64,000 bases of DNA, from contig CDMY01000231.1 of the NCBI GenBank assembly GCA_001179505.1, positions 62,001 to 126,000 on the forward strand, written 5' to 3'. This document shows positions 1-62,590 of this stretch, piece after piece (positions within the stretch are counted from its first letter, which is position 1; each line of letters opens with the position of its first letter). Origin of the DNA: Vitrella brassicaformis CCMP3155. Its lineage: Eukaryota; Protista; Chromerida. Position numbers and translations under genes: made by a program. The notes under the pieces were generated by a model. It was not told the origin of the DNA. It did no database searches and saw only the letters and a program-made list of their open reading frames with translations.

Positions 1-420
1 GCTTCACAGACAGAGGTGCCTCCGTTTTCATTTGTCTGTCTCACTCATCTTCATTCGCCTGCATGTGTGTGGTGAGTCGTGCGGCCCAGTGGGCTGTGTG
101 TGACTTCTGTGTGTGAGTATATTTGCGTGAAGCACGCCCTGGACATACAGACGGGACGGATGAGACGCAATGAAGGACACACATTCACTACACATTAAGT
201 CGATTGGATCATGTTGTGAGTCCCACCAACACCAAGTACATCCACCAAACGAGGTCCATCTGTCAGTCAGCTGGCTAGTGGTCGACCATCGTATCGGCCC
301 CATGAGCCCCTCCCCCACTCACACCAGCTGCAGCTGCAGCACCACCGCCACCGCCAGCAGTGCCATTCAACAGACGATCAGACATGACTGCACACACAGA
401 CAGAAAGAGAGAGACACATG
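1..420 (-). repeat. Third copy of the Seh1 3' end (terminal exon 275-387 plus downstream flank); end of a duplicated block that extends left of the window
   Basis: 1-420 aligns by eye with ~11133-11570 and ~5660-5930, including the terminal exon ...GGGAHGADxMVDH* (stop at 275-277). Similarity stops at ~420. Confidence 0.85.
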
Positions 421-629
421 AATCGTGGTCCCTCTGTCTTTTCCTGTCCGCCCTGCCTCAAGGGATGAACTGTCCTTCCCTTCGTTGTGGCCTACGTGGC
501 TGTTCGCGTCTTTGCTTTTGTGGCTGGCTAATGTATGTGTCCTTCATTCATCCGTTGTGTGAAGCGCTCCGAGTCCTGCTGACAGACCGCATGCAAAGAC
601 GGCGTATGTGCGTGCGTGAGGGTGACTGA

Positions 630-2852: not shown

Positions 2853-3046
2853 GATTCCATCAAGGATTCTCGCAAACCGTCTCTGTCCGTCCCTTCAATT
2901 TGCTTCATCTGATTCCATCAATTGGATATCTTGTCTTCTCTCTTTTCGTTTGCTCTCTCGACCGGCCTGTGCTCAAACCTTTCAAGCCTGTTCTCTCTCG
3001 CGTCACGAGCCTTTCAGCTGCATCTACCCTCGTGCTGCAGTCCACC

Positions 3047-4681
3047 ATGACTCGACTCTCGGCTGCCGCGGTGTGCCTCATCTTCCTGGTGTCGGCTGCC
3101 CTGGCCGACGATGCTTCGCGCAACGCGCTCCGCTCCATGCGCGGCAAGAACGCTGCTGCCAATGATCAAGGTGCATAGGAATGAGACCAGATGCCTGCAC
3201 ATTACAGCCCATCACATCACTTGTCTGCCTGTCGTCTCTCTCTCCCTTTTTTTGTGCAGCTGCGGATGATCTTGTGTCCGGCCTCAGGTGGACACACAGC
3301 ATCCCTGAGCTGGACAGCATGCCTGAGGAGCCACCCCAGCATCGCGCCCTGTGGCCCAAGATCAGTGCGCCCAAGATCCCCGCGCCCAAGATCAGCCCGC
3401 CCAAGATCAAAAGCCCCGATCTCGGCAATCTGGGTAAGACAGCAGGCAAGGCTGCTGGGGCGTACTACGGAGGCGCTGCTGGAGCCGCTCTTGGCGGGGC
3501 CGTTGGGTCGAAATTCGGCCCTGGGGGGACGGCGGCAGGGTCGGCTATTGGCACGGCTGTTGGCGCGACAGAGGGAGCAAAGCATGGGGGCAAAGCTGGA
3601 GAAAAGGCCGGAGACTGGGTGGAGGACCGGCTCGGCGGCTCTTTCGGGTTCAGACGTCTGAGTGACGACACGGCCGATGCAGAGGTAGGAGGGATGGGAG
3701 AGAGGCACTGGGCTTGCTTCAGCACTTGGTCGCATTGCACCCCATCTCATTATCTCATTGCTGTCTGTCTGTCTGTCTGTGAGTGCAGGACGCCGCGGAT
3801 GATCTTGTGTCCGGCCTCGAGGACAAGCACGCTGAGCAGCATGAGGAGGAGCCACCCCAGCATCGCGCCCTGTGGCCCAAGATCAGTGCGCCCAAGATCC
3901 CCGCGCCCAAGATCAGCCCGCCCAAGATCAAAAGCCCCGATCTCGGCGATCTGGGTAAGACAGCAGGCAAGGCTGCTGGGGCGTACTACGGAGGCGCTGC
4001 TGGAGCCGCTCTTGGCGGGGCCGTTGGGTCGAAATTCGGCCCTGGGGGGACGGCGGCAGGGTCGGCTATTGGCACGGCTGTTGGCGCGACAGAGGGAGCA
4101 AAGCATGGGGGCAAAGCTGGAGAAAAGGCCGGAGACTGGGCGATGGACCGGCTTGGCGGCTCCTTCGGGTACAGACGTCTGAGTGACGACAAGGCCGATG
4201 CAGAGGTAGGAGGGATGGGAGAGAGGCACTGGGCTTGCTTCAGCAGTTGGTGGCATTGCACCCCATCTCATTGCTGTCTGTCTGTCTGTCTGTCTGTCTG
4301 TGAGTGCAGGACGCCGCGGATGATCTTGTGTCCGGCCTCGAGGACAAGCACGCTGAGCAGCATGAGGAGGAGCCACCCCAGCATCGCGCCCTGTGGCCCA
4401 AGATCAGCGCGCCCAAGATCAGCCCGCCCAAGATCAAAAGCCCCGATCTCGGCAATCTGGGTAAGACAGCAGGCAAGGCTGCTGGGGCGTACTACGGAGG
4501 CGCTGCTGGAGCCGCTCTTGGCGGGGCCGTTGGGTCGAAATTCGGCCCTGGGGGGACGGCGGCAGGGTCGGCTATTGGCACGGCTGTTGGCGCGACAGAG
4601 GGCGCAAAGCATGGGGGCCGATTGGGAGAAAACGCCGGAAACTGGGCGGAGGACCGGCTTGGCGGCTCCTTCGGGTACTAG
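3047..4681 (+). CDS. Secreted glycine-zipper peptide polyprotein A (signal peptide + 3 repeats); exons 3047-3170, 3260-3684, 3789-4205, 4310-4681
   Basis: Signal peptide MTRLSAAAVCLIFLVSAALA. GT-AG introns keep the frame (phases 1,0,0). Each of exons 2-4 encodes an acidic spacer, HRAL, (PKIxx)n, a GxxxG zipper and GGSFG(F/Y), followed by RRLSDD in exons 2-3 and by the stop in exon 4. Confidence 0.9.
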
Positions 4682-4861
4682 ACTGGTAGATGAGTGGTAG
4701 ATGCTTGCATGGGGAGGGATGGGCACGCGGTTTCGGCTCATAGGAGATGAGGTAGACTACGGGGGTTCATGATTGTGGCTGCCCATGAATGCTCTGTCTG
4801 TCTTTCCCATTCCCGTGTATGTGTACACCCCATTCATGTATGTGCGTGTATGTACGTGTAG

Positions 4862-5365
4862 ATAGGCAGGTAAGTAGGTAGATCGGTTCGGCGCTGCCGT
4901 GCCAGTAGCGTAGGGTTCACAGATAGAATGGGCAATGGGGTCGGCTGACTGGATGCTATTCATGATGACACGAGGCTGGGGCTTCGTGAATTTCATGATC
5001 ACATGGATATATAAGTGTACACTAGGCAGATCAGCTGATAGGATAGATGTAACATTGTGTATATGCCTGTTGACGTCACCGTTTTCCTTTTCACTGTCTG
5101 TCTTGTCCCATCGTAACGTGTGTGTATGTGCTGCACGGGGCTGGGCTTCGTGAATTGCGTGATTACATGTATTTGCACACTACGCATTCCCGTTGCCCTC
5201 CATGTGTGTGTCCATGTGTCGACAGGTAGGTAGGTGTAGATAGCTGTGCCAGTAGAGTACGGTAAGACAGATACAAGGGGAATGGGCTCGACTGGCTGTC
5301 ATCTTGATGATGCACGAGGCTGGGGCTTCGTGGATTGCATGATTACACGCATGTGTACCCATACA
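4862..5365. repeat. ~170-bp degenerate repeat units in the 3' flank of polyprotein A
   Basis: GTAGGTAGATCGGTTCGGCGCTGCCGTGCCAGTAG...GATGACACGAGGCTGGGGCTTCGTG recurs at ~4862, ~5222, ~10452 and ~10722, with a degenerate inverted copy at ~805-895. Confidence 0.7.
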
Positions 5366-5780
5366 TTCTCGTTCGGTCTGGTGAGCCTACGCGTAGTGCG
5401 CCCTCTGTGTTTCCTGTCGTATGGTTGGTCAGTTGTGGGTCTTCCACATATCCACAGGTGTGGCTGTCTGTCTGTCTCCTGTCTGGCTGTCTCCTGTCTG
5501 GCTGGCTGCCTGTAGTTTTCATGTGTCTGTCGTTAATCACTTTCATACGCGTGTATGTGTGGTGTGTCGTTTGGCCAAGTGGGCTGTGTGTGCCTTGTTT
5601 GTAAGTATGTTTGCATGAAGCACGCCTTGTTGATATGCGAATTATGACGGGATGCATGGATGGAGGGATGAGACGCAATCAAGGACACACATTCACTACA
5701 CATTAAGTCGATTGAATCACAGTTTGAGTCCCCAGCACCAAGTACATCCATCAAACGAGGTCCACCTGTCAGTCAGCTGG

Positions 5781-7007
5781 CTAGTGGTCGACCATCGCAT
5801 CCGCCCCATGAGCCCCTCCCCCACTCACAGCAGTAGCAGCAGCACCACCGCCACCACCACCAGAGCCATTCAACAGACGATCAGACATGACTGCACACAC
5901 AGAGAGAGAGACACACATGAATCATGCGTGCGTGTGTCGTGCCCTTCTCCCTCTCTGGCTGACATGACGGCCTCGGTTCCTTCTTGTCGTCTCCTGGTAT
6001 GAGTGTGGTGATGGGCACCCACTCGGGCGGCTCCTGGTCGCCACACCGCCATGATATCACCTGCAGCGAAGAGTGTATCATGCAGCATTCACCACCAATG
6101 GGGTTTTCCTTTCCGTCCTCCTCCCCCCCTTACTGTTCCGTCATCTGCCGCTGCGGTGAGGACGGTGCCGGTGACGTTGAAGCACACACGCCATATCTGC
6201 ACACATACAGCCCACAGTTGTCACGAAGCATGCACTGAATCACACAACGCAATGGGTGTGATCTTAGGAGGCGGGCTCACCGGTCCCGGCGATATTTCGA
6301 TCTTCTGCAGGATCTGGAGCAGCCACTTGTCGGACGCGCCGGCCACACCCGACTCTGCGCAGACACAGACACTCAGCGAGAGATGCCTGTCTGTCGCGTA
6401 CACAACACACACAAGCTTGTTGCTTCCGTGCATACCAGCCGATGGTGGCAAGATGGCCTCCGCCTGAGCAAGGGGGCGAGCCGTCTGTCGATGGACGTAT
6501 GTCTGCCTGGCTGTGTGCCAGCCCTATTACTGACCGGTGCGTTGGCCGATGTGTCCTGTTGTGGCTGCTGCTTCCACTGCCATATGTGCACCAGGGGCTC
6601 GTCCCCACAGGTGGCCAGCAGATCATACGGCCTGCATAGGTTGGGTGCCCACGCCACATCCTTCAGAGGGGCACTGCTCGCCTGCACACACACACACACA
6701 CCAAGACAGGCCGATCCCATCCCGGCCGCCAGCCAACCTTTTGCTCTGCAAGCCTCGACCAGCCCCGTCCACTCCTGAAATGGACCACAGCAGCCAGCCA
6801 TGCGGTGATCCAATCCATCGCTGTGTGTGCCGCCCGCCATGCCATAGATCGATCTCTCACTCACTTGCCCCAGACGTCGAGTATGCCGTCGTTGCCCACC
6901 ACGGCCAGTATCTGGTCCTCACTGTCGAAGTTCCACGCCAGCGCCGTGCAGCCTCGGGGGCAGTTGCTACGCTTGTGACTTGTGAAACAATCCTCCTGAC
7001 CGATTGA
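5781..7007 (-). pseudogene. 5'-truncated duplicate of Seh1 (last exons only)
   Basis: Near-identical to 11420-12700 (VAWAPNLCRPYDLLATCGDE; IWRVCFNVTGTVLTAAADDGT). Similarity ends at ~7017 inside an intron, so the N-terminal WD40 exons are absent. Confidence 0.85.
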
Positions 7008-7174
7008 TTGAACACACACCTCATCACACTCGAACCCTGGAACCCCGCAAACCCTTGCCTGATTTGAATAAGCCAGGAGAGAACGCTCCCGCGAAGACGG
7101 AAGATCTTTCCACCTCTTTCATCTGTCCCTTCTTTCCCTCCCTCTCTACCTGCCCACAGTTCGCTATCCCCTCC

Positions 7175-7200
7175 CCCCGGCCTGAGGTCATCTCAGATCT
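7175..7200 (+). promoter_or_regulatory. Second copy of the 26-bp upstream element
   Basis: Identical to 2827-2852; ends 17 nt before the ATG at 7218. Confidence 0.5.
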
Positions 7201-7217
7201 CTCATCTCGGTCAGGTC

Positions 7218-7718
7218 ATGAAGATTGTGATGTGCCTTGTTGGTGCCCTTCTGCTGGCTGCTGCTGTCTGCGGTGCCATGACCGATGCAACCGCGCCATC
7301 TGACGCCGCCACCAATGTGATGGTGGGGAACGTTCAACAGGAGTGGAAGGAGCGCCTGCTTCCTTCCCTGTGTGTGTTTGCAGGTGCTTCGCGGATCCGT
7401 GAGCGCCTCCGCGGACGACGTCGATATGGACAATGGTGAGCCCCTCAACGGCTTATTCTCCTCATGTTCTGGGTGCATGTGTGTGCGTCCTGCCTTCCTG
7501 CAGCTCACGACGCTGAGGCTGAGGCGGAGAGGCGTGAGCTCCAGATGTACTGTTCCCCCGGCATGTGTTTCCCCCCGCCCTGCTGCTTGTCATCTCTTCC
7601 ATCTGTCAGTCGCTACTGTCCCGACTCCATGTGCAACCGCCCCCGTCATCCCTGCTGCGTTCGCCAGTGGCCAGGATCGCAGGCGGCATGGTCACAAGCA
7701 CGGCGACGACCATATTAA
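7218..7718 (+). CDS. Secreted cysteine-rich peptide precursor; exons 7218-7322, 7384-7435, 7504-7718
   Basis: Signal MKIVMCLVGALLLAAAVCGA, acidic pro-region (..ADDVDMDNAHDAEAEAE), RRELQ, then YCSPGMCFPPPCC and YCPDSMCNRPRHPCC. Splice phases 0 and 1 keep the frame. Confidence 0.85.
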
Positions 7719-8908
7719 TTAGAGGTGAATGGGGAGGAGAGAGCTGCGTGCAGAGTGCATTGCTCGATGTATCTGGCGAATGCACATGCAGGTGAGTGAG
7801 TGGGCGACTGACTGCACCGCCGACTGCTGATGGATGGATGATTACATGGACAACTTGTAGCCTAGTCCTCTGATCTGACTATCCTGCTACACTACGCTGG
7901 TGGGGGATGTATGCAATCATTCCACGCATGGTTTGCTTTTTTCCGTTGCTCGTGCCATTCATTCGTGTGTCTGTCTGTATCGGTACCACGTAATCATTCA
8001 CATGGTCGGTGCTGGAATGCGCGTGCCAACTCTGATTGGATGTGTACAATCGGTGCACACGGTCGGCGATGGCTGGCTGGTCCCTTGCGGGTTCGTGTGC
8101 TGTGTTGTTCCCACCACAAACAACCCCTCGTTTGTCTGTCTGCCTCAGGGTGTCTCTGTGCCAGGCTTCCTGTTTCATTTTGATGGTTGTATTTGTCCTA
8201 GCTAGTGTATTTGTCGGTCCTAGTACGTCACTTTGCCTGCCTGCCTGGCGCAGTTGTTCTTTCGAAAACATGTGTATAACACGAACAGACGCTGTGTCGT
8301 GTGCTCGGTGCGTAAGGAAAATGAAATGATCGTACATGGCGAAGATTCACGTTTGCATCCATACACATATCATATGCACAGTCTGCATGATGTCTGAAAT
8401 TGGCGCTGTCATACCAGCGGGGTACGTCACACGAGGGGTGCAGAGGTGGAGGTGAATGACTACACCCCTCCAAATCAAGTTTGCAATGGGATTGTGTATA
8501 ACAGCCTGCTCGTGCTCGCGTTTGCACGCGCCGCAGCAGCGGGGCCATCGTTCTTCGGCAGCTCGGGCGTTAGGGCGCCGTTGAACAAACGTCCTGTGAT
8601 GATCGACGAGGAGGCGACGCAAAGCTTGGTTTGATGTGATAGAGAGCAGGGAGAGCGCCTCTTTTCCTTTCTTTAAGTTTTCGAATTGGAATTCAAGAAC
8701 GGACGGGCGAGAGAGAGAGAGAGAGATGTAGTTTTTCGTCTCCTTCTGTCTCGCTCTCTCTCTGTCGCCCCGCCCACCCGCCTCCCTATTCTCCGTCGCT
8801 TCCCTCATCCATCTTTTCCTCTTCTCTCTTGCCGACACTGATCCGCCTTGCCTCGAGCCTCAGACTTGCTATCGACCTGCTCTCTCTCTGAAGCCTTTCA
8901 GCTGCATC

Positions 8909-10281
8909 ATGACTCGCCTCTCGGCTGCCGTGGTGTGCCTCATCTTCCTGGTGTCGGCTGCCCTGGCCGACGATGCTTCGCGCAACGGGCTCCGCTCCAT
9001 GCGCGGCAAGAACGGTGCTGCCAGTGATCAAGGTACATAGGAATGAGACCAGATGCCTGCACATTACAGCCCATCACATCACTTGTCTGCCTGTCGTCTC
9101 TCTCTCCCTTTTTTTGTGCAGCTGCGGATGATCTTGTGTACGGCCTCAGGTGGACACACAGCATCCCCGAGCTGGACAGCATGCCTGAGGAGCCACCCCA
9201 GCATCGCGCCCTGTGGCCCAAGATCAGTGCACCCAAGATCAGCCCGCCCAAGATCAAAAGCCCCGATCTCGGCAATCTGGGTAAGGCAGCAGGCACGGCT
9301 GCTGGGGGGGCTGTTGGGACCAAGTATGGAGGCCCTGTTGGAGGCGCAGCTGGCGCGGCCGCTGGGGGCCGATTGGGAGAAAAGGCCGGAAACTGGGCGG
9401 AGGAGCGGCTTGGCGGCTCCTTTGGGTACAGACGTCTGAGTGACGACACGGCCGATGCAGAGGTAGGAGGGATGGGAGAGAGGCACTGGGCTTGCTTCAG
9501 CAGTTGTTCGCATCGCACCCCATCTCATTGCTTGCTGTCTGTCTGTCTGTCTGTGAGTGCAGGAAGCCGCGGATGATCTTGTGTCCGGCCTCGAGGACAA
9601 GGACGCTGAGGAGCATGAGGAGGAGCCACCCCAGCATCGCGCTCTGTGGCCCAAGATCAGTGCGCCCAAGATCCCCGCGCCCAAGATCCCCAGCCCCGAT
9701 CTCGGCAATCTGGGTAAGGCAGCAGGCACGGCTGCTGGGGGGGCTGTTGGGACCAAGTATGGAGGCCCTGTTGGAGGCGCAGCTGGCGCGGCCGCTGGGG
9801 GCCGATTGGGAGAAAAGGCCGGAAACTGGGCGGAGGAGCGGCTTGGCGGCTCCTTTGGGTACAGACGTCTGAGTGACGACACGGCCGATGCAGAGGTAGG
9901 AGGGATGGGAGAGAGGCACTGGGCTTGCTTCAGCAGTTGTTCGCATCGCACCCCATCTCATTGCTTGCTGTCTGTCTGTCTGTCTGTCTGTGAGTGCAGG
10001 AAGCCGCGGATGATCTTGTGTCCGGCCTCGAGGACAAGGACGCTGAGGAGCATGAGGAGGAGCCACCCCAGCATCGCGCCCTGCAGTTCAGCCTGCCCAA
10101 GATCCCCAGCCCCGATCTCGGCAATCTGGGTAAGGCAGCAGGCACGGCTGCTGGGGGGGCTGTTGGGACCAAGTATGGAGGCCCTGTTGGAGGCGCAGCT
10201 GGCGCGGCCGCTGGGGGCCGATTGGGAGAAAAGGCCGGAAACTGGGCGGAGGAGCGGCTTGGCGGCTCCTTCGGGTACTAG
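8909..10281 (+). CDS. Secreted glycine-zipper peptide polyprotein B (paralog of A, shorter zipper); exons 8909-9032, 9122-9462, 9563-9895, 10000-10281
   Basis: Same signal exon (124 nt) and intron phases as A. Repeats HRAL(W/Q)-(PKIxx)n-DLGNLGKAAGTAAGGAVGTKYGGPVGGAAGAAAGGRLGEKAGNWAEERLGGSFGY-RRLSDD. Confidence 0.9.
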
Positions 10282-10870: not shown

Positions 10871-11419
10871 GCGTTGCTCAAATGATTTGAGTTGGTTATT
10901 TGTGGGAACCATAGCGTGGGCGGCTGTGGTTTTCATCTGACTGACTGTCGATACGTGTACGTGAATGTGTGATGTGCCGTGTGGCCGAGTGGGCTGTGTG
11001 AGTGTCTGTGGGCCGAGTGCACGTACAACACTGATGGGATAAATGGATGGATGAGATTACGGTCGAGTGGAGTTCATGCCGCACTTTTCGCCTTCTTCGC
11101 TATTCGTCGGACTGAGTTACGTATTTGTGGGCTTCACAGACAGAGGTGCCTCCGTTTTCATTTGTCTGTCTCACTCATCTTCATACGCCTGCATGTGTGT
11201 GGTGAGTCGTGTGGCCAAGTGGGCTGTATGTGCCTTGTTTGTAAGTATGTTTGCATGAAGCACGCCCTGTGGATATGCAGACAGGATGGGGGGATGCATG
11301 GATGGGTGAGACACAATCAATGGGACACATTCACTTCACATTGAAGTCGATTGGATCACGCTGTGAGTCACCAGCACCAAGTACCTCCATCAAATGAGGT
11401 CCATCTGTCAGTCAGCTGG

Positions 11420-13685
11420 CTAGTGGTCGACCATCGCATCCGCCCCATGAGCCCCTCCCCCACTCACAGCAGCAGCAGCAGCAGCACCACCGCCACCGCC
11501 AGTGCCATTTAACAGACGATCAGACATGACTGCACACACACACAGAGAGAGAAGAGAGACACATGAACCGCGCGTGCGTGTGTCGTGCCCCCCTCTCTCT
11601 TTGGCTGACATGACGGCCTTGGTTCCTTCTCGTCATCTCCTGGTATGAGTGTGGTGATTGGCACCCACTCGGGCGGCTCCTGGTCGCCACACCGCCATGA
11701 TATCACCTGCAGAGAAGAATGCATCATGCAACATTCACCAATGGGTTTTCCTTCCCGTCCTCCTCCCCCCCTTACTGTTCCGTCATCTGCCGCTGCGGTG
11801 AGGACGGTGCCGGTGACGTTGAAGCACACACGCCATATCTGCACACATACAGCCCACAGTTGTCACGAAGCATGCACTGAATCACACAACGCAATGGGTG
11901 TGATCTTAGGCGGGTTCACCGGTCCCGGCGATATTTCGATCTTCTGCAGGATCTGGAGCAGCCACTTGTCGGACGCGCCGGCCACACCCGACTCTGCACA
12001 GACAGACACTCAACGAGAGATGCCTGCCTGTCGCGTACACACGCACACAAGCTTGTTGCTTCCGTGCATACCAGCCGATGGTGGCAAGATGGCCTCCGCC
12101 TGAGCAAAGGGGCGAGCATGAGATGCCCTTCTGTCGATGGGCGTATGTCTGCCTGGCTGTGTGCCTGCCCTATTACTGACCGGTGCGTTGGCCGATGTGT
12201 CTTGTTGTGGCTGCTGCTTCCACTGCCATATGTGCACCAGGGGCTCGTCCCCACAGGTGGCCAGCAGATCATACGGCCTGCATAGGCTGGGTGCCCACGC
12301 CACATCCTTCAGAGGGGCACTGCTCGCCTGCACACACACACACACACACACACACAGAGCACAACACAATGTAACGCACACGCACATCCCATCAGCCCAG
12401 CCATCGACCGGTCAGCCAACCTTTTGCTCTGCAAGCCTCGACCAGCCCCGCCCACTCCTGTAATGAACCACAGCAGCCAGCCATGCGGCGATCCAATCCA
12501 TCGCTGTGTGTGCCGCCCGCCATGCCATAGATCGATCCCCTACTCACTTGCCCCAGACGTCGAGTATGCCGTCGTTGCCCACCACGGCCAGTATCTGGTC
12601 CTCACTGTCGAAGTTCCACGCCAGCGCCGTGCAGCCTCGGGGGCAGTTGCTTCGCTTGTGACTTGTGAAGCAATCCTCCTGACCGATTGATTGAACACAC
12701 AGCTGCAATGTGTGGGTGGTGATGGCCGCCATTGTGTGCGTACCATTGGCCACGCCCCGAGCGAGAGGAGGTCTTGCGCCTCGTAGATGCGGACGCTGCC
12801 GTCGGCACTGCACGTGGCCTGATGCGTCGCGTGGGTGGTTGAGCATTCATCCATCACACACACACGTGCGCGCCTCGGCTCTCTGTTTGTTGGCTGACCA
12901 GTCTGAGTCCATGCTTCTTGGGCGAGAACTGGATGTCGCGTACGGGCATCTGACACGGATATTTCGACGCAGGCCACAATGTGACCGTAGGGCGATGACC
13001 GTGTGTGCGTTGGATCGATTCACTTGTGCGTCTGAGAGTTTCGCTCTCCTCTTCCATATGTTTGTCAGATCTGCCGGCGCGCCGACATTCTCAGCGTGGC
13101 CCTTTGGTCTGTATCTCTCCGACCAGATGCAGACAGTCCTGTCCTCCGAGCAAGTCGCAAGAACCTATCCGCCAACGAGTACCTCTGTAGGGCCCACACT
13201 TGCGTGTCTTCTCTTGACTCGACTCACCTGGCCGAACTCGGGATGCGCCCAGTCGACCCGCCAGATGGGAGCATCGTGAGCCTGACCACACACAGACGAT
13301 CTAACCCGTGCGTGCCGTGCCTCGAGACCACCCGTCGTACGCTCTCGATGTTGGCTGACTCATTCCACTCGCCGCTTCTCTGGTCGTAATCAAACACAAT
13401 GACCTTCTGAGATGACGAACACACCGCCAGCCGGTCACCTGCATGAGCGACGGAGGGAGAAGAGTCAAGTCATTCAGTGAATGAATGAATGAACGAGTGA
13501 ACGTTGTAGTGTATTAGCGGTTGGTGTGACTGTGCTTACCGTAGTAGTTGTATGTGATGTCGTGGATGTAGTCTGCTGACGTCGCCAGCCTCACTGTGAT
13601 GCTCTTGTCCAACCGCTGATAAATCAACACAAACGACAAGCAACGGACGAACGCTGTGATTGATTCATCTTCCTTTGCTGACCAT
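11420..13685 (-). CDS. SEH1: Nucleoporin / GATOR2 WD40 protein Seh1, full-length and multi-exon
   Basis: N-terminal ..SADYIHDITYNYYG|DRLAVCSSSQKV.., VRDIQFSPKKHGLRL, ATCSADGSVRIYEA, VAWAPSLCRPYDLLAT and WRVCFNVTGTVLTAAADDGT match Seh1/Sec13 WD40 blades. The YDLLAT and IHD..Y motifs favour Seh1. The first exon appears to supply only the ATG (13683-13685). Confidence 0.85.
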
Positions 13686-15391: not shown

Positions 15392-17460
15392 ATGAGGTCT
15401 TTCCCTGCTCTCTGCCTTGCCCTCGCGGCAACACAGCTGTTTGCGGGTGAGCACCACACTCACTCAACCACATTTGCCTGCCTGCTGATGTCTGTGTGTT
15501 GCTTGTGTGCAGCTGCGCAGGACAGTGAACCCAAAGTCCTGGAGCCCAAGGAGCAGGTGTTCCTTGTGGGCTCCATCAACGGCGAGAAACACCTGCACAA
15601 TGCGGCTCCCATCACCGTCGACCCCTTCCCCCTCCATCCCCCCGAGCCGCCCCGCACAGTCACCATCCTCTTCCAGCCAGACCCCGAGCACGCCACCAAA
15701 GAGCTCGAGGACATCCAAAGCGTCCAGTTCACCGTCAGGAATGAGAAAGGAAGAGCAGTCTACAATCGGACGACGTCCAGTCCACCGTTCTCCCTCTTTG
15801 CCCACGAGAAGGGGACATTTCAGGGTGCCTCGCTCGGCACCAAGACTCCCAGCACGCAGCTGAGGCGGAGCCTGCAGAAGGACGGCAACCATCACTCTTT
15901 CCTGCTGCAGGGGCGCCACACCCTTGAGGCGGCGGTGCTGCGGAAAGGAGACAAAGACCCCAAGGTCTTCACCGTCGATCTGAAGACGACGAACCACAGT
16001 GAGCCAGAGATGCAGACAGACCTACCAGCCTGCCACCCACCACTCATTCATGGATGGCTCTCTGTCCGTTGCGTGCAGGTAGCTCGTTGCTGACCCATCC
16101 CGGGATAAGTGGGATAGAACTCGAGAAGGAGACATCCGACGAGTGGTTCGGCTCTCTCAAGGAAGCGGCCACCAAGGCGGGCATCGCCTTCGGGTCCGCC
16201 ATCTGCCAGACGCCATTCGACCTGCAGGGCACACCGAGATGCCGATATGGCGGCGAGGGGGCGTACCAAGCCATTGTGAGAGAGGAGCTGGCTGTCATAT
16301 CGCCCGAGAGGGAGTGCAAGTGGTGGTTTACCCGGACGAGTGCGGACTTGGATGAAATCGACTTCACTGGCTGCGACGACATCTTTGACCTAGCCATCGC
16401 CAACAAGCAGCAGGCGCGCTTCCACACGCTCCTGTGGCACAGCGACGCCTTCTACGGCAACATCGAGGAGTGGCTTCACGCCATGAAGGCCGTCGACAAG
16501 AGAGCCCAGCTGATCGGCCACATTGAGAAAATGGTCGAGAGGTATCGGACGCCCAAGTACTCCAACATCATCGCATGGGACGTTGTCAACGAGGGTATGG
16601 CACATACGCACAACTTAGGTGTCTTGACGTCTGTTTGTCTGTGTCATGTGATCTGTGTGTGCAGCGATTGATGACGCGCAGGACGAAGCCGAGGTCAGGA
16701 GCGGCGGCTACAAGCTGCGTGACAGCATGTGGCATCCCGACCTCCCCGAGTATATCGACCTCGCCTTTGTTTACGCCCACAAGGCCGGACAGGCCGCCGA
16801 CGCCAAGCACAACTCCACCACGATGCCGCCCATGAAGCTCTTCTACAACGACTACTCGTGCGAGTCCACTGAAGGCTACAGCGGCACCAAATCGGACGCC
16901 GTCTACAACCTCTTGGCGGGCATGAAGAGACGTGGGGTGCCTGTCGCAGGGGTCGGCTTCCAGTCGCACGTCAACGGCGAGTACAGCTACTATGAGGGCG
17001 TGCGGAAGAACATGCGGCGTCTGGGCGAGTTGGGGCTGGAGGTGCAGTTCACCGAGCTGGATGTGGCCTGCGGCAAATGGGGGGTGGGTGCGGGGGACGA
17101 CCCCGGCTACACGCCCTGCAAGCAATCCGAATGGACACCGGAAAGAGAGCTGCAACAGGCGAGAGGGACCAGAGACAAAGCACAGGCGAAGACAGAGTCC
17201 ATGCGACCTCTCTCCATTTGTGCCTCTAGGCGGAGATATACCGGCAGTTTATGCGTGTATGTCTGGAAGAGCCCAACTGCACCGGCTTCATCACATGGGG
17301 CTTTGTGGACAAGTCATCGTGGCTCAACCGGGGCATGTATTCCCCTGACTGGCCGCTGCTCTTTGACTCGTCATACAAACCCAAGCAGAGCTACCTCGCA
17401 CTCAGAGAGGAGCTGAGGAACCACACGATAGCCGCGGAGAAGATGGGGCGCCGACAGTGA
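15392..17460 (+). CDS. Secreted GH10 endo-beta-1,4-xylanase with an N-terminal accessory domain
   Basis: Signal MRSFPALCLALAATQLFA; GH10 motifs HTLLWH, WDVVNE (acid/base Glu), KLFYNDY, GVGFQSH, FTELDV (nucleophile Glu), TWGFVDKSSW and PLLFD. Confidence 0.9.
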
Positions 17461-18021
17461 CGCCGGCCAGCGTCGTGCGTAGTGTTTGCGTCGCGTCAAG
17501 TGGTGCTGTGCTCTCTGACGGGCGACTTAGGCAGTGAAGTATTTTGTGGTGTTTTGTGTTTTGTGTGGCGGAGGCAGATATGAGACAAGACACCGAATGT
17601 CGGTGTCATTCCATCCACTGACTGTCGAACAAGTGGTTTTGAGCGAACTGGGGTCTCCTCGATTGCTGATTGGGCGGGGTGATGTGTGTGTGAGAGATCG
17701 AAGGTGTGCATGCGCCATGGATGAGACATCATCGCATTCACGATCGTTCAACTGACAGGTCGTCCGTTCATGTAATTAATGCGAACAAGCCGATCGGATC
17801 GCTGGATGGATGTGTGTCCGCCTTGCCTGCCTACCTGTGAGCATGACTACAGCTCTCACTTGACTGTCAAAGACCGCATTGATTGACAAATACTACAAAG
17901 AACGACAAAGGAAAGAACACATGCAGCGAACGAATGCACTGCAAACACATCTCCATCACCAAACAGAGGACAGCTCAGCTCAGCTCAGCTCAGCTTGGCT
18001 GCTGCTCATGTGTGCGTTCGT

Positions 18022-18885
18022 CTAGGAGCCGCCCTGCAGCACACGCTTCGACACCTTCCTGCACGTATCCCTCACACTCTGCACACACACGAGAAGACAG
18101 GCAGCCGGGAGAATGAAGACACCTCTCTGCACACACACATGTGTGGCTTCCTTCCTCCCGTACCTCCTTGAAGTAGCCATAGAACTCGTTCTGTGAGCAC
18201 CGGCCATAGCCACCCCTCCCCTCCCCGCCACACGTCGGCCAATACAGGCCCTCGGACCGGTCGATGCATGTGTTCAGCTGCACCAAGTAACACACCAAAG
18301 GCCCTAGGAAAGCAGCAGCCTGCGGCGCAAAATTCGGGCGGCATTGCTCCCGAACGTAGCCACAAGCAGTCGAAGCGATGCCCTTGGCGGCACTGTTGCT
18401 GAACTGGGTGCAGGGGTTGGAAGAGCTGCGGCAAAAGGGTGAGGGGTCACAGGACTGGAAGCACCGATAGAGACTCTGACCGGACAGCAGGTTAGAAACG
18501 CACTGCGAGCAGCACTTTCGTTGCTGCAGGGCGCGCCCGCTGCCCTCCTCAGCCTCAGCGTCCACCACCCCCACACAGCCGTCCTCGTCGCAGTCGACGA
18601 AGGCCTCGGCGGCCATGTCGGTGTCGTTTGCTGGTGAGGGGGGAAAGATGGGCTGATGCGCTGTGACATTCGGGGGCGGGACCGGCTGTTGCGATGGGAT
18701 GGGAGGGCTCGCCTCACCTACAGAGAAGCACACATGCGCAATAACATAGATAGATAGTCCACCCTCTTCATCCGGTTGTTACCGCTCGTGGATGTCGATT
18801 CATTCAGGGGTCGCCCGTGCGGCTGAGAAAGCACCGCTGCGATCAGACAGAGGAAGATAAACGGACACAGCGCACGAGTCACCAT
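18022..18885 (-). CDS. Secreted cysteine-rich protein precursor; exons 18885-18783, 18717-18164, 18078-18022
   Basis: Signal MVTRALCPFIFLCLIAAVLSQ, then RPLNE, a Pro/acid-rich pro-region, GRALQQ and a 14-Cys mature region ending KRVLQGGS*. Splice phases 1 and 0 are consistent. Confidence 0.8.
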
Positions 18886-58952: not shown

Positions 58953-61900
58953 TCATGCTGTCCTGACAGGCATGGGTATGGCGGGCTGTTGCCGCAGCTC
59001 ACGTTCCCTCTCGTCAAAGTCATCCTCGTCGCTGTCGTAGTCTTCGCCTAGCTCAATCGGCACATCACCTGTGTGGATGAACGAGACGGACCGACACATA
59101 TGAGAAAGAAGTCTCTGTGTGTGTGTGTGTGTGTGTGTGTACCAGGGTAGTCTCCGCCCCTGTAGTTGCTCATCTGTATCTCGCGTAACCTCTGCTCCTC
59201 CTCATCGTCCTCCTCTATATCACCCACACACATACGCACACATACACACAGAGCCGGAGGTGCACACCTCGTGTTGTCTTTTTTTCCCTTTTCGTGTGGC
59301 AGCAAATGGGTGTGTGTCTCTGTATACCGGCCATGGTCTCGTAGGTGACGGGTTTGGTCCTTACGGACTGACAAATGATCACGATCATCGCTGAAAGACG
59401 GAGGGAGGGAGGGAGGGAAGGGCCAGAGGCACACGGAAAGAGCATGCGGGGAATTGTTTTCATGTTTGTCATATGGGTACGTACCGATCAGTACGGCAGA
59501 GACCCCGACAATCGCTGCCGTCCAAATGCCTGCAGGACCCACACACCCACACCACAACACACCACACCACAACACACCACAACAGAGAGGGTATCAGAAA
59601 GCAGCTGCCAACGCGTGAAGCCATAACCCCCCACTGACCGATCTTAGAAGAGAGTGCGGCCTCGTCCATGCTGGCGTCTCCTCCCTCGCCCGTGAGTGTC
59701 TGTCCGCCCTCACTGATGGTGCCATTACGTCCCTGCCCCCTGTCGCTCGAGCCCTGTTGTGCATGGGGATAGGACGGGGGGGCGGGGGGATGGGGCAGCG
59801 CATGACCATCCAGAGTATTCGACTTGCCACCACCCCCTCCACTGGATGGCTGTGCTGGTGCTGGTGCTGGTGGGTGTGGGATGGGGGCGGATGAGTCGTC
59901 GAGTGGTGGTGGGACGGTCGTGTCAGAGGTGGATGTGTGTGGACGAGACACAGGGGGCAGGGCAGTGGGGGTGCGTGGGGGGCTAGATGGGCTAGACGAC
60001 GAGGATGTGTTGGCGGGGGGTGGGCTAGGGGTGCTCGTGGTGGTGCTCGTGGTGGTGGTGGTGGTAAGCAGTGGTGCGTCCGTGTCTGTCGATACCGGCG
60101 GACTTGTCGAGTAGAACTCCTTCGGATACAGCGGCAGGGCCTTGTGCTCAGGAGCTGACAACCACACACACAGAAGGCCATGTTTTCCCGTCCATCCCTC
60201 CCTCGTGACCGACAGTACGACGGTGGCTTACGTGGCGGCCTCAGTTTGTCCAGGTATCTTGGGCATGCTGCATCGGCGAAACCTGCATCCACCCAACACA
60301 ACACCACAGCACACCGCAGCACACCACATCAACCTGTCCGTCTGTCTGTCTGTCTGTCTGATGGTTTTCGGCTTGGCACTCTCTTGTCTGTCGTGCCGAC
60401 TGACCGACTCTATCCTCGGTGCGGTCAAATATGACGTCCCTCTGCACCATGAACGACATGCCCAGCACCGTGTCATGCTTCCGGTTGTCGTCGATGGCCA
60501 AACACCACTTCCTGATGAACAAACCAACCAACCACAGACACACAGCACACGGTCAATGGGGAAGGCGGGCAACTGAATGCCTCTTCTCCCTGCGATCGTC
60601 TCTCTCTCTCGTACTTGGACGGTGGCTTTGGGAAGAGGTACGAGTGCGCTCTCCAATGGATGGTGCCGCCACCCCTGCAATCAACCAACCAACCACCGAC
60701 TCCATCCACAGGCGCCCCGTCCCTCCCTCCCTCTGCCCCTCTGTGGTCTCTCTCATCTATCTCGCCCCACCCACTTGAAGGTGATTCTGAAGACGGGGAA
60801 GGTGTCGAGGTCCTTCTCATCCTCAATCTCCCAGCAGTCGTCCGAGTGGTGGGTCCGCACGCCCTTGCAATGCTCGGGGTCCTTACAGAAGCTCTCGAAC
60901 GTCTCGGAGATGCCCTTCCATATCTCGGGAGGCACATACGTGAATGTCGTGCCTGACCGACAGACAACCCACGAACGGCACGACAGACTGACAATGCGTG
61001 TCGTTCTCCAGTGTGTGCATATACATGCATGGGTGTACCAGAGTCGACAATGACCGATCCCCAGGCAGAGCGGCCCCCCAGGCTCTTGCCCTCGATGTCG
61101 GCATCCTGCAAATGGATTGCAAGAATGATGCGGCCCAGAGGACACATATATCAGCATGATGGATCTGATCGCTAAGGCGGCTCACTCACTTCGATTCCAA
61201 TGGAGTAGTAGAGATGGTTCTCCATGGGCGTCCACACGACCGTCGGCTTCTCCTCCGCATTGTCATAGTTGCGGTGGAGGCTCTGGTTGTACCCACCCAC
61301 AGTCAGTATGCCACCCTGATCCGCCAAACATATGGCGAACACCTTCGTGTCGACCGCACCTTTCTGAGGGAGGGAAGGAAAAGAGAGCAAAGTAGGCAGA
61401 CAGACAGACAGGCAGCAGACGGGAGTGAGTGACGGAAGGGCCAAGAGTGGCGTGATATGATCGGCCGGACGGCTTCATTTGATGGGATTGAGCTGACCTG
61501 GTCGCTGAAGAGAGCATCGATGATGGTCTCGTGGTCCCTTGACCGCCTTGGTGCCACACCCACAATGCCGCTGGCCTTCTGGGTGGTGAACAGCTTGGTC
61601 TCGGCATCATGGCAACCTGACAGACACAAGCACCCACCCCACCCACACCAGCCACATACATACACACATACATTTAATCACACCGCCATTCCATTCTCTG
61701 CCATTCATTCGTTGTGCCCGCCTACCAGCATAAGCCTTGACTGCAGGATTCTTCCGTTCAACATCGCCTATGCGGATGTAGTCCTGGAACCAGTAGCCCG
61801 CAATGCTGGAGCCCTCCGTGTAGCCCTGGTAGTAGCTGCACCGCTCATTGCGGCAGGGACACCCACCCTCACATTGCTGCCAGCAACCACACACACACAC

Positions 61901-62338
61901 AAGCACAGACAAACACAGACACCAGAAAACAGACAGAGGTCAGCGATACAGCCCACACGTGTGGCCGTCGGCGGTATGTGCGATGTGATTTGCACCAACC
62001 ACAGGAACTGTACATACCTGCCACTCAGCGGTGTCGGAAGCGCTGAAGTCGAATGGCGCATCGATGTGGTTGCCGCAGTTTTTGCAGTTTTTGCAGGGGA
62101 AGGCCAAGATGGTGCTGCCCGTATCCAGAATGACGCTCTGCCGCTGCGGGACGGGGGATCCCACGAGGATGTCGATGAAGTAGTAGGCGTAGCCGTGGAT
62201 GGAGCCGTAGATGCGCGCCTCCTCCAGCTTCTTGCCCGGCTGACACACCACCACCGCACATGGCACCAACACCAACAGCAGCACCAGCCACAGACAAGGC
62301 CTGACCGGCCGATGACGGCCTCTCCGCCTTGGCAACAT
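58953..62338 (-). CDS. Plasmepsin V / ASP5-like membrane-anchored aspartyl protease (family A1); start could extend to 62500
   Basis: YG.I..YAYYFIDILVG.P..QRQSVILDTGS.ILAFPC.NC.NCG.H, YYQGYTEGSSIAG, GCH..ETKLF..QKASGIVG, VFAICLADQGGILTVGG, VIVDSGTTFTY, VLGMSFM and a C-terminal TM (IWTAAIVGVSAVLIG) with acidic tail. Motif order matches Plasmodium plasmepsin V as I recall it. Confidence 0.85.
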
Positions 62339-62590
62339 CAGACGATCTTCTCCTTTCCGCAGCGAAGAAGACAACACAGCGCTTCTCCACACACAGATAA
62401 GCCTCTTGTCGCCTCCGCCTCGCGCTCTCCTATCTCCTCGGCGAGCTTGTAGCTCGCAGCGAGCGCTGACTCTCTCTTTTGAGTTGTCTCTGGTTTTCAT
62501 CAGCGTGCTTTGGTTGTCGACCCAGGAGAGCAGCGTTCATCTCAATCGTGACTTTCATCGCCTAAGGCGGCGTTCGCCTCAGTCTGCACA

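Follow-up and report, generated by a model that had tools for sequence, protein, structure and literature searches.

A 64,000-nucleotide stretch of the genome of the chromerid Vitrella brassicaformis CCMP3155 (contig CDMY01000231.1, positions 62,001 to 126,000 of the forward strand; hereafter the window, whose own numbering is used below) carries two related genes, called here A and B, between positions 3,047 and 10,281. We propose, with a probability of roughly one half, that they are tandem paralogous precursors of secreted polyproteins, that these would be cut at R-x-L motifs, and that the peptides so freed would act on target membranes. The architecture, that of a secreted polyprotein fenced by R-x-L motifs, is real; cleavage, secretion and membrane activity are inferred. 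The parts of the proposal differ in strength: the precursors are probably cut at the R-x-L sites, the assignment of the cutting to an enzyme like plasmepsin V or ASP5 is tentative, and an action of the products on foreign membranes is more tentative again.

The two genes were spliced from the six-frame open reading frames and the DNA. Both models have four exons, GT..AG introns and an unbroken frame: gene A (3047-4681, + strand) encodes 445 residues, and gene B (8909-10281, + strand) encodes 359. Each peptide unit lies in one phase-0 exon, and the introns fall inside the acidic spacers, as follows.

3047..3170, + strand: gene A exon 1, with the start codon, the signal peptide (3047-3106, 20 residues, predicted cleavage behind ALA) and the first part of the pro-region; in-frame model, donor GTGCAT.
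3260..3684, + strand: gene A exon 2, remaining pro-region to HRAL, unit A1 (3352-3660, 103 residues including RRL) and first half of spacer 1; spliced model, X1 contig.
3789..4205, + strand: gene A exon 3, second half of spacer 1, HRAL, unit A2 (3873-4181), RRL and first half of spacer 2; spliced model, X8 contig, AlphaFold 2 (AF2) prediction.
4310..4681, + strand: gene A exon 4, second half of spacer 2, HRAL, unit A3 (4394-4678, 95 residues) and a stop right after GGSFGY; spliced model.
8909..9032, + strand: gene B exon 1, with the signal peptide and the first part of the pro-region; spliced model, X8 contig across the exon 1-2 junction.
9122..9462, + strand: gene B exon 2, pro-region to HRAL, unit B1 (9214-9438, 75 residues including RRL) and half a spacer; spliced model, identical to CEL95573.1.
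9563..9895, + strand: gene B exon 3, half a spacer, HRAL, unit B2 (9647-9871), RRL and half a spacer; spliced model, Gly-zipper_Omp 18.4 bits for the unit.
10000..10281, + strand: gene B exon 4, half a spacer, HRAL, unit B3 (10084-10278, 65 residues) and a stop after GGSFGY; spliced model.

The gene B model is identical across all 359 residues to the Vitrella entry CEL95573.1 (A0A0G4EGK9), an unnamed product that UniRef labels automatically as a 'Glycine zipper domain-containing protein'. An earlier reading made from the letters alone (the sequence-only reading) had taken the pair for genes of a eukaryotic chromerid, and this identity bears it out. It had also known of no description of the family: this holds for the literature on Vitrella with PEXEL or antimicrobial peptides, and fails for gene B, already public under its automatic name. 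The gene A product was absent from word-index searches of a 5.8-billion protein collection (lengths 76-628 residues), in which gene B was present; gene A therefore appears to be unannotated. Searches of the genome covered the CCMP3155 assembly of 72,700,666 bp in 1064 contigs and scaffolds (PMC4501334).

Both proteins begin with MTR and LSAAAVCLIFLVSAALA, followed by DD. This is a predicted signal peptide, with an n-region, a 17-residue hydrophobic core of mean Kyte-Doolittle hydropathy about 2.5 (by hand) and an A-x-A motif, ALA, ahead of DD. Plastid targeting was considered and ruled out by inspection, since the region after the signal opens with DD and is not transit-peptide-like. Three units then follow in each precursor, always in the order acidic spacer, HRAL, PKIxx pentads, glycine zipper and GGSFG(Y/F). 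The spacer counts 36 residues, with 13 D/E in A and 15 in B, and closes in HRAL. RRL follows units 1 and 2 of both proteins, and in unit 3 the stop codon stands directly after GGSFGY. Without RRL, the A peptide has 100 residues and a net charge of +6, and the B peptides have 62-72 residues; unit B3 starts with QFSL where the other units have WPKIS. R-x-L occurs at the five predicted boundaries of each protein (RRLSD twice, HRAL-W/Q three times) and nowhere else in either. Past its signal peptide precursor A is almost neutral, with 49 K+R against 52 D+E.

Most of what the sequence-only reading had said of this layout survives. Its signal peptide followed by three copies of spacer, HRAL and peptide, with RRL after the first two and a stop after the third, was found again in the spliced models of both genes; its mature A unit of about 100 residues and a charge of about +6 agrees with the computed values; and its acidic spacers balancing the charge of a polyprotein agree with the near neutrality of A. 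For the spacer itself, it had given about 13 D/E and about 33 residues.

Precursors of the apidaecin and magainin type carry several cationic peptides, acidic spacers and basic processing sites. A and B share with them the several cationic peptides and the acidic spacers, but their peptides are much longer (62-100 residues), the processing motif is another one and there is no homology. In our view the most informative comparison is rather the one that would link HRAL and RRL to the R-x-L motifs of Apicomplexa, namely the Plasmodium and Toxoplasma export elements (PEXEL and TEXEL), and of diatoms (silaffins), a comparison that the sequence-only reading had not drawn. The TEXEL, RRLxx, is recognised in Toxoplasma by ASP5, a Golgi protease that cleaves behind the Leu, also where the motif is internal or C-terminal, and that is reported to be strict for RRL; the PEXEL motif of plasmepsin V is RxLxE/Q/D (PMC4764566). 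RRLSD of A and B satisfies both. Like the TEXEL and PEXEL substrates, A and B are predicted secretory proteins bearing RRLxx or RxLxE/Q/D, in a genome that has plasmepsin V-like genes; unlike them, A and B have five sites per protein that fence repeats, and belong to a free-living organism with no host cell for export. The placement of the motifs is compatible with positioning of the ASP5 type, not with that of a classical PEXEL.

The nearest architectural precedent is the diatom silaffin precursor Sil1p, which has a signal peptide, an acidic domain and tandem basic repeats ending in RRxL/RXL; its C-terminal RRIL/RRNL is missing in the mature peptides, and for diatom wall proteins at large RXL has been put forward as an endopeptidase signal (PMC4557024). 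A and B have no sequence similarity to Sil1p; they carry glycine zippers instead of Lys/Ser-rich silica-precipitating peptides, place an acidic spacer before every unit, and come from an alveolate, not a diatom. In A, in B and in a further unit found on contig C51 (see below), the stop lies exactly before the position of RRL, which fits a removal of RRL from the mature peptide.

The genome holds at least 10 pepsin-family loci. At one of them, on contig C688, plasmepsin V is the best solved relative, with an E value of 4e-39 against 3e-7 for the next family. With this locus as query, a paralogue was found inside the window.

60473..62500, - strand: plasmepsin V/ASP5-like aspartyl protease paralogue, with an N-terminal signal or anchor and the motifs DTGS and DSGT.

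The best Protein Data Bank matches of its first exon are plasmepsin V structures (4zl4/8tyf, E 2.8e-18 against 5.6e-4 for the next family). It is 57-65% identical to the C688 paralogue in matched exons and lies about 50 kb from gene B. The chance that one of two such genes in 72.7 Mb falls within about 55 kb of the locus is roughly 0.3%, as a post-hoc estimate. This gene is a candidate for the R-x-L endopeptidase.

We then come to the peptides themselves. The unit of A contains two period-4 runs of 8 glycines with G-P between them, and that of B one run of 10. When the Gly-rich part was shuffled, a run of 8 came up in about 1 in 1,000 shuffles and a run of 10 in 2 in 100,000. For unit A2, AF2 (25-row alignment) predicted a disordered PK-rich N-terminus and two helices, 24-55 and 57-95, broken at G-P, at a mean predicted local distance difference test (pLDDT) of 53. 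The long GxxxG run, the GP turn and the second small-residue helix of the sequence-only reading are thus recovered in A, as 8+8 glycines and as a helix-GP-helix of low confidence. Prediction of a four-copy complex of residues 22-100 of the same unit returned a score of 0.00 and no model, and speaks neither for nor against an oligomer; a feature search of the ESM Atlas gave a best score of 0.86, under the useful range.

An exhaustive phmmer search of 1.84 billion representative proteins found no homologue outside Vitrella, and below 1e-10 only B itself; word-index protein searches returned only itself for full-length B and no match for unit A2. There were 28 weak phmmer matches, between 1e-7 and 1e-3, all to glycine-zipper segments from bacteria or metagenomes. 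Several of them are located C-terminally in polymorphic toxins (P0006, P0028/P0030, downstream of Rhs_assc_core, in the variable cargo region), and in P0008 the zipper lies behind an eCIS core domain. Another bacterial protein, P0020, has a signal peptide, immediately after it QWPKYRPPKIEKP, and then the zipper, which mirrors the predicted mature N-terminus WPKISAPKI. Aligned by hhalign, profiles of the six Vitrella units and of five such bacterial modules matched at a probability of 98.4% (E 1e-14, 69 columns, 48% identity), in an alignment that takes in the two helices with their G-P turn as well as the AGEKAxxW..D tail. The score of this alignment was 85.9; shuffling the columns freely, 60 times, gave at most 17.6, and shuffling all but the Gly columns gave at most 25.6. 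Because the shuffled controls score far lower, the similarity goes well beyond composition and glycine periodicity.

This suggests a relationship of the zipper, together with the first part of the tail, to the C-terminal module of RHS and eCIS-core toxins, and it lends indirect support to the membrane-active role put forward by the sequence-only reading. The toxicity of these bacterial modules is itself inferred from their position. Those modules have, like A and B, two GxxxG helices joined via G-P, a GS.FGP.GTAAG..IG core and the AGEKAxxW..D tail. They occur as a single copy fused behind a delivery domain, whereas in A and B a eukaryotic signal peptide precedes three copies, and every copy has its own PK-rich N-terminus and acidic spacer; Pfam-type profile scans detected no RHS or eCIS domain in A or B. 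Further glycine-zipper toxins for comparison are EsxX, CdzC/D and Tde1.

With whole protein B, PF13488 (Gly-zipper_Omp) scored 32.6 bits over three stretches, above the 25-bit whole-protein cut-off, and DUF6861 also passed its Pfam cut-off; single units gave 15-19 bits against PF13488, below the 25-bit cut-off. Most members of PF13488 are bacterial lipoproteins with one copy, compared to the three stretches matched in B. Both A and B have the trait of this family, two small-residue GxxxG helices with a turn, the AF2 helices being of low confidence. By these profile scores B is formally a Pfam Gly-zipper protein, and A and B belong to no bacteriocin family. The likeness to class II bacteriocins and microcins seen by the sequence-only reading was not upheld: microcin V and the class II families (PF17508, PF10439) matched at E values of 0.5-9 only, and the leader is a eukaryotic signal, not a double-glycine leader. 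PADLOC gave no match, and NCBIfam nothing meaningful, for A or B.

To follow expression, four sequencing runs were mapped to 3020-9019. Two of them, X3 and X5, behave as DNA, with contigs unbroken through intron 1. X8 and X1 are RNA, because contigs of neighbouring genes are spliced in them (CT..AC and GT..AG joints at 6196-6864 and 7321-7790). One X8 contig passes from exon 1 to exon 2 of gene B exactly at the predicted junction: after 9019 it reads GCCAGTGATCA, the last 11 bases of exon 1, and goes on at 3258, and it bears a B-specific T>C change at the position equivalent to 3306. Removal of intron 1 of gene B is therefore confirmed. On gene A, an X1 contig covers 3478-3633 in exon 2 with zero mismatches, and an X8 contig covers 3930-4154 in exon 3. 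We conclude that expression of A and B is supported in part; the complete splicing pattern rests on the public gene B model. Apart from this, a CTGT microsatellite, at 3761-3781 and at the equivalent sites of the other spacer introns (introns 2 and 3), draws unrelated contigs and gives a false depth peak and spurious joints in read mapping. One X8 RNA contig links exon 2 of gene A to its exon 4 (3460 to 4612) with a gap of undetermined letters between; it could reflect a collapse of the repeats during assembly, or one more paralogue whose core differs.

In the rest of the genome the family has a sole further member, one terminal exon on contig C51 (L007 1307-1537) that has no zipper. It shows the same spacer, HRAL, W and four PKIxx pentads, and then goes straight to AGDWIRDRLGGSFGY and a stop. 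A GAG insertion after 4354, present in both RNA runs (X8 and X1), matches this member, so it seems to be transcribed. Exon 1 exists in the genome in the copies of A and B only, with no third, and a whole-genome search with PF13488 yielded no loci besides the known ones. C51 begins inside a segmental duplicate of window 12274-13560, and the upstream exons of its unit lie outside the assembly. Segmental duplications of 84-95% identity are found at window 24-427, 4651-6167, 6628-7014, 11154-11809 and 12274-13560 and at L007 1-2980; a minus-strand gene and the region downstream of the precursor genes recur in them, and C51 is one more such unit. An own-genome match on C314 (35% identity, E 0.0017) was dropped, as it sits in an unrelated open frame.

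Compared to each other, A and B are 95-99% identical in their introns, 92-93% in their exons and 96% in exon 1. The two genes hardly differ in spacers, HRAL, pentads, tail and introns, and the codon differences are concentrated in the zipper core, where nearly every codon is changed, many of them synonymously, and the glycines are retained. The ratio of nonsynonymous to synonymous differences (pN/pS) in the core is 0.3-0.45. Positive selection, which exons diverging faster than introns might have indicated, was ruled out on this basis: the excess of differences lies in the core and is largely synonymous. We read the pattern as old, selectively maintained cores within a scaffold homogenised by gene conversion. 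It would follow that the scaffold, not the zipper, defines the family, and that constraint on a site cannot be read from its six copies as if they were independent. The zipper-less C51 unit shows that conservation lies in the processing scaffold, in the PK pentads and at the C-terminal motif rather than in the zipper. A common processing scaffold with differing cores, as in A, B and the C51 unit, would be the pattern of a diversified secreted-peptide family.

The way in which A and B may work can be pictured as follows. After entry into the endoplasmic reticulum, an endopeptidase would cut past the Leu of each R-x-L; most likely this would be one of the genome's two plasmepsin V/ASP5-like aspartyl proteases, one of which is encoded in the same window. 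The C-terminal RRL would then be trimmed, in the way silaffins lose RRIL/RRNL, the last unit already ending at GGSFGY. Three peptides would be freed per precursor, of about 100 residues and +6 for A and of 62-72 residues for B, and until then the acidic spacers would hold the precursor near neutral during transport. Each peptide would consist of a basic, probably extended PKIxx region, a zipper forming helix-GP-helix, and a conserved AG(D/N)W..(D/E)RLGGSFG(Y/F) tail. Given the basic PKIxx region and a zipper related to a bacterial toxin module, the most likely action would be binding to an anionic surface, followed by self-association of the glycine zippers in the target membrane and its perturbation. 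Bacteria, grazers or a host would be the likely targets. By analogy, A and B would work most like a silaffin-type precursor crossed with a glycine-zipper toxin module of bacteria.

Several observations weigh against this proposal. Concerning the peptides, the AF2 confidence for unit A2 is low (pLDDT 53), and the zipper is weakly hydrophobic. As the best 19-residue Kyte-Doolittle mean is 0.89 in A and 0.47 in B, the zipper helices are more polar than classical transmembrane segments would be; any action on membranes would be that of soluble peptides associating via their glycine faces. The bacterial modules are the best matches out of a huge library, and their similarity is partly a selection effect; Gly-zipper modules are also present in non-toxic outer-membrane lipoproteins. 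The zipper-less C51 unit means that the zipper is dispensable for the family. Concerning the cutting, the HRAL-W/Q sites fit R-x-L alone and neither RRL nor xE/Q/D, while ASP5 is reported to be strict for RRL. The first R-x-L lies at residue 70, 50 residues past the predicted signal cut, compared to 15-30 residues for PEXEL. Since A and B have been homogenised in their flanks and introns (95-99% identity), the conservation of the sites over the six units is not independent. As for the spliced models, RNA reads had been named by the sequence-only reading as the means to confirm the junctions. The exon 1-2 junction of B stood up in X8; the joints listed include none for introns 2 and 3 (14 further joints are unlisted), and X8 holds some intron-like sequence as well.

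Three other explanations have to be compared with it. The one that survives best, though we hold it to be unlikely, accepts cleavage at R-x-L and takes the peptides for building material of a sporangium or cyst wall or of a dense-organelle matrix, like silaffins or coccidian wall-forming proteins; the PK pentads and Gly/Ala segments would be structural or self-assembling, and the terminal Tyr/Phe would serve as cross-link points. The layout indeed matches that of Sil1p, the polarity of the zipper speaks against a classical membrane helix, and the zipper-less C51 unit retains the PK pentads and GGSFGY. PKIxx pentads, moreover, resemble proline-rich wall proteins. However, the core is specifically similar to a family of bacterial membrane modules, beyond composition and glycine periodicity, and there are few Tyr per unit. 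We also know of no silicification in Vitrella.

It is quite improbable, in our estimate, that the proteins stay unprocessed, as single secreted or surface polyampholytes such as adhesive or extracellular-matrix repeat proteins in which R-x-L is merely part of a recent repeat. The six units are recent copies homogenised by gene conversion, and repeated RAL and RRL need not reflect selection. Yet the stop falls exactly at the RRL position in A, in B and in the more divergent C51 unit, R-x-L is found only at charge boundaries, and unrelated neighbouring genes, listed below, close their acidic pro-regions with R-x-L. The RR pair is a dibasic site of classical type, used in multi-copy antimicrobial precursors of animals and fungi. 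Cutting after Arg by a subtilisin/kexin-like convertase (RR then L, HR then A), in place of a plasmepsin V/ASP5-like enzyme after Leu, could be imagined and would suit HRAL, which lacks the second Arg preferred by ASP5 (PMC4764566); it is the least probable of the three, as one R-x-L rule covers both types of site and also RREL and RAL of the neighbours, HR then A is a poor kexin site, and plasmepsin V-like genes are present, one of them linked.

Extending the preferred reading of A and B as R-x-L-cut, membrane-acting precursors, one may ask whether R-x-L cutting by enzymes of the plasmepsin V/ASP5 type was a general proprotein-convertase system of the free-living apicomplexan ancestor, predating export into host cells. 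A and B would then be natural multi-site substrates with a linked protease paralogue, their cargo being a bacterial toxin zipper redeployed as a multi-copy secreted weapon. We regard this wider scenario as doubtful in its full form. Vitrella brassicaformis is a free-living algal relative of malaria parasites. If its plasmepsin V-like enzymes do cut R-x-L sites, it would offer a tractable non-parasitic setting for the role of the PEXEL/TEXEL proteases before parasitism, and A and B would be clean multi-site substrates for testing that role, which is the main value of the finding. If true, the scenario would also provide a candidate enzyme class for the unexplained RXL processing of diatom wall proteins. 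A bacterial-type zipper toxin module turned into a repeated, charge-masked secreted peptide would, likewise if true, be a new class of protist peptide for defence or competition, of interest for the coral-reef microbiome, and variable cores on a constant scaffold would form a natural library.

Two other loci of the window bear R-x-L after an acidic region.

7218..7718, + strand: gene Y, between A and B; its signal peptide and acidic pro-region are followed by RREL, then Q and a small Cys-rich peptide; RNA-spliced in X8 and X1.
17990..18733, - strand: open frame whose acidic stretch ends in RAL, with QQ and a Cys-rich region after it; open reading frame only.

The introns of gene Y (7323-7383, 7436-7503 and 7725-7791, the last in the 3′ untranslated region) are spliced in both X8 and X1. 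From its translation, gene Y appears to be an unrelated precursor with the same acidic-pro/R-x-L design as A and B, and the open frame at 17990-18733 is a candidate for another precursor of that design. Finally, the open frames at 16054-17416 (+ strand), which bear WDVVNE and TELD motifs, look by eye like a xylanase-like glycoside hydrolase of family 10.

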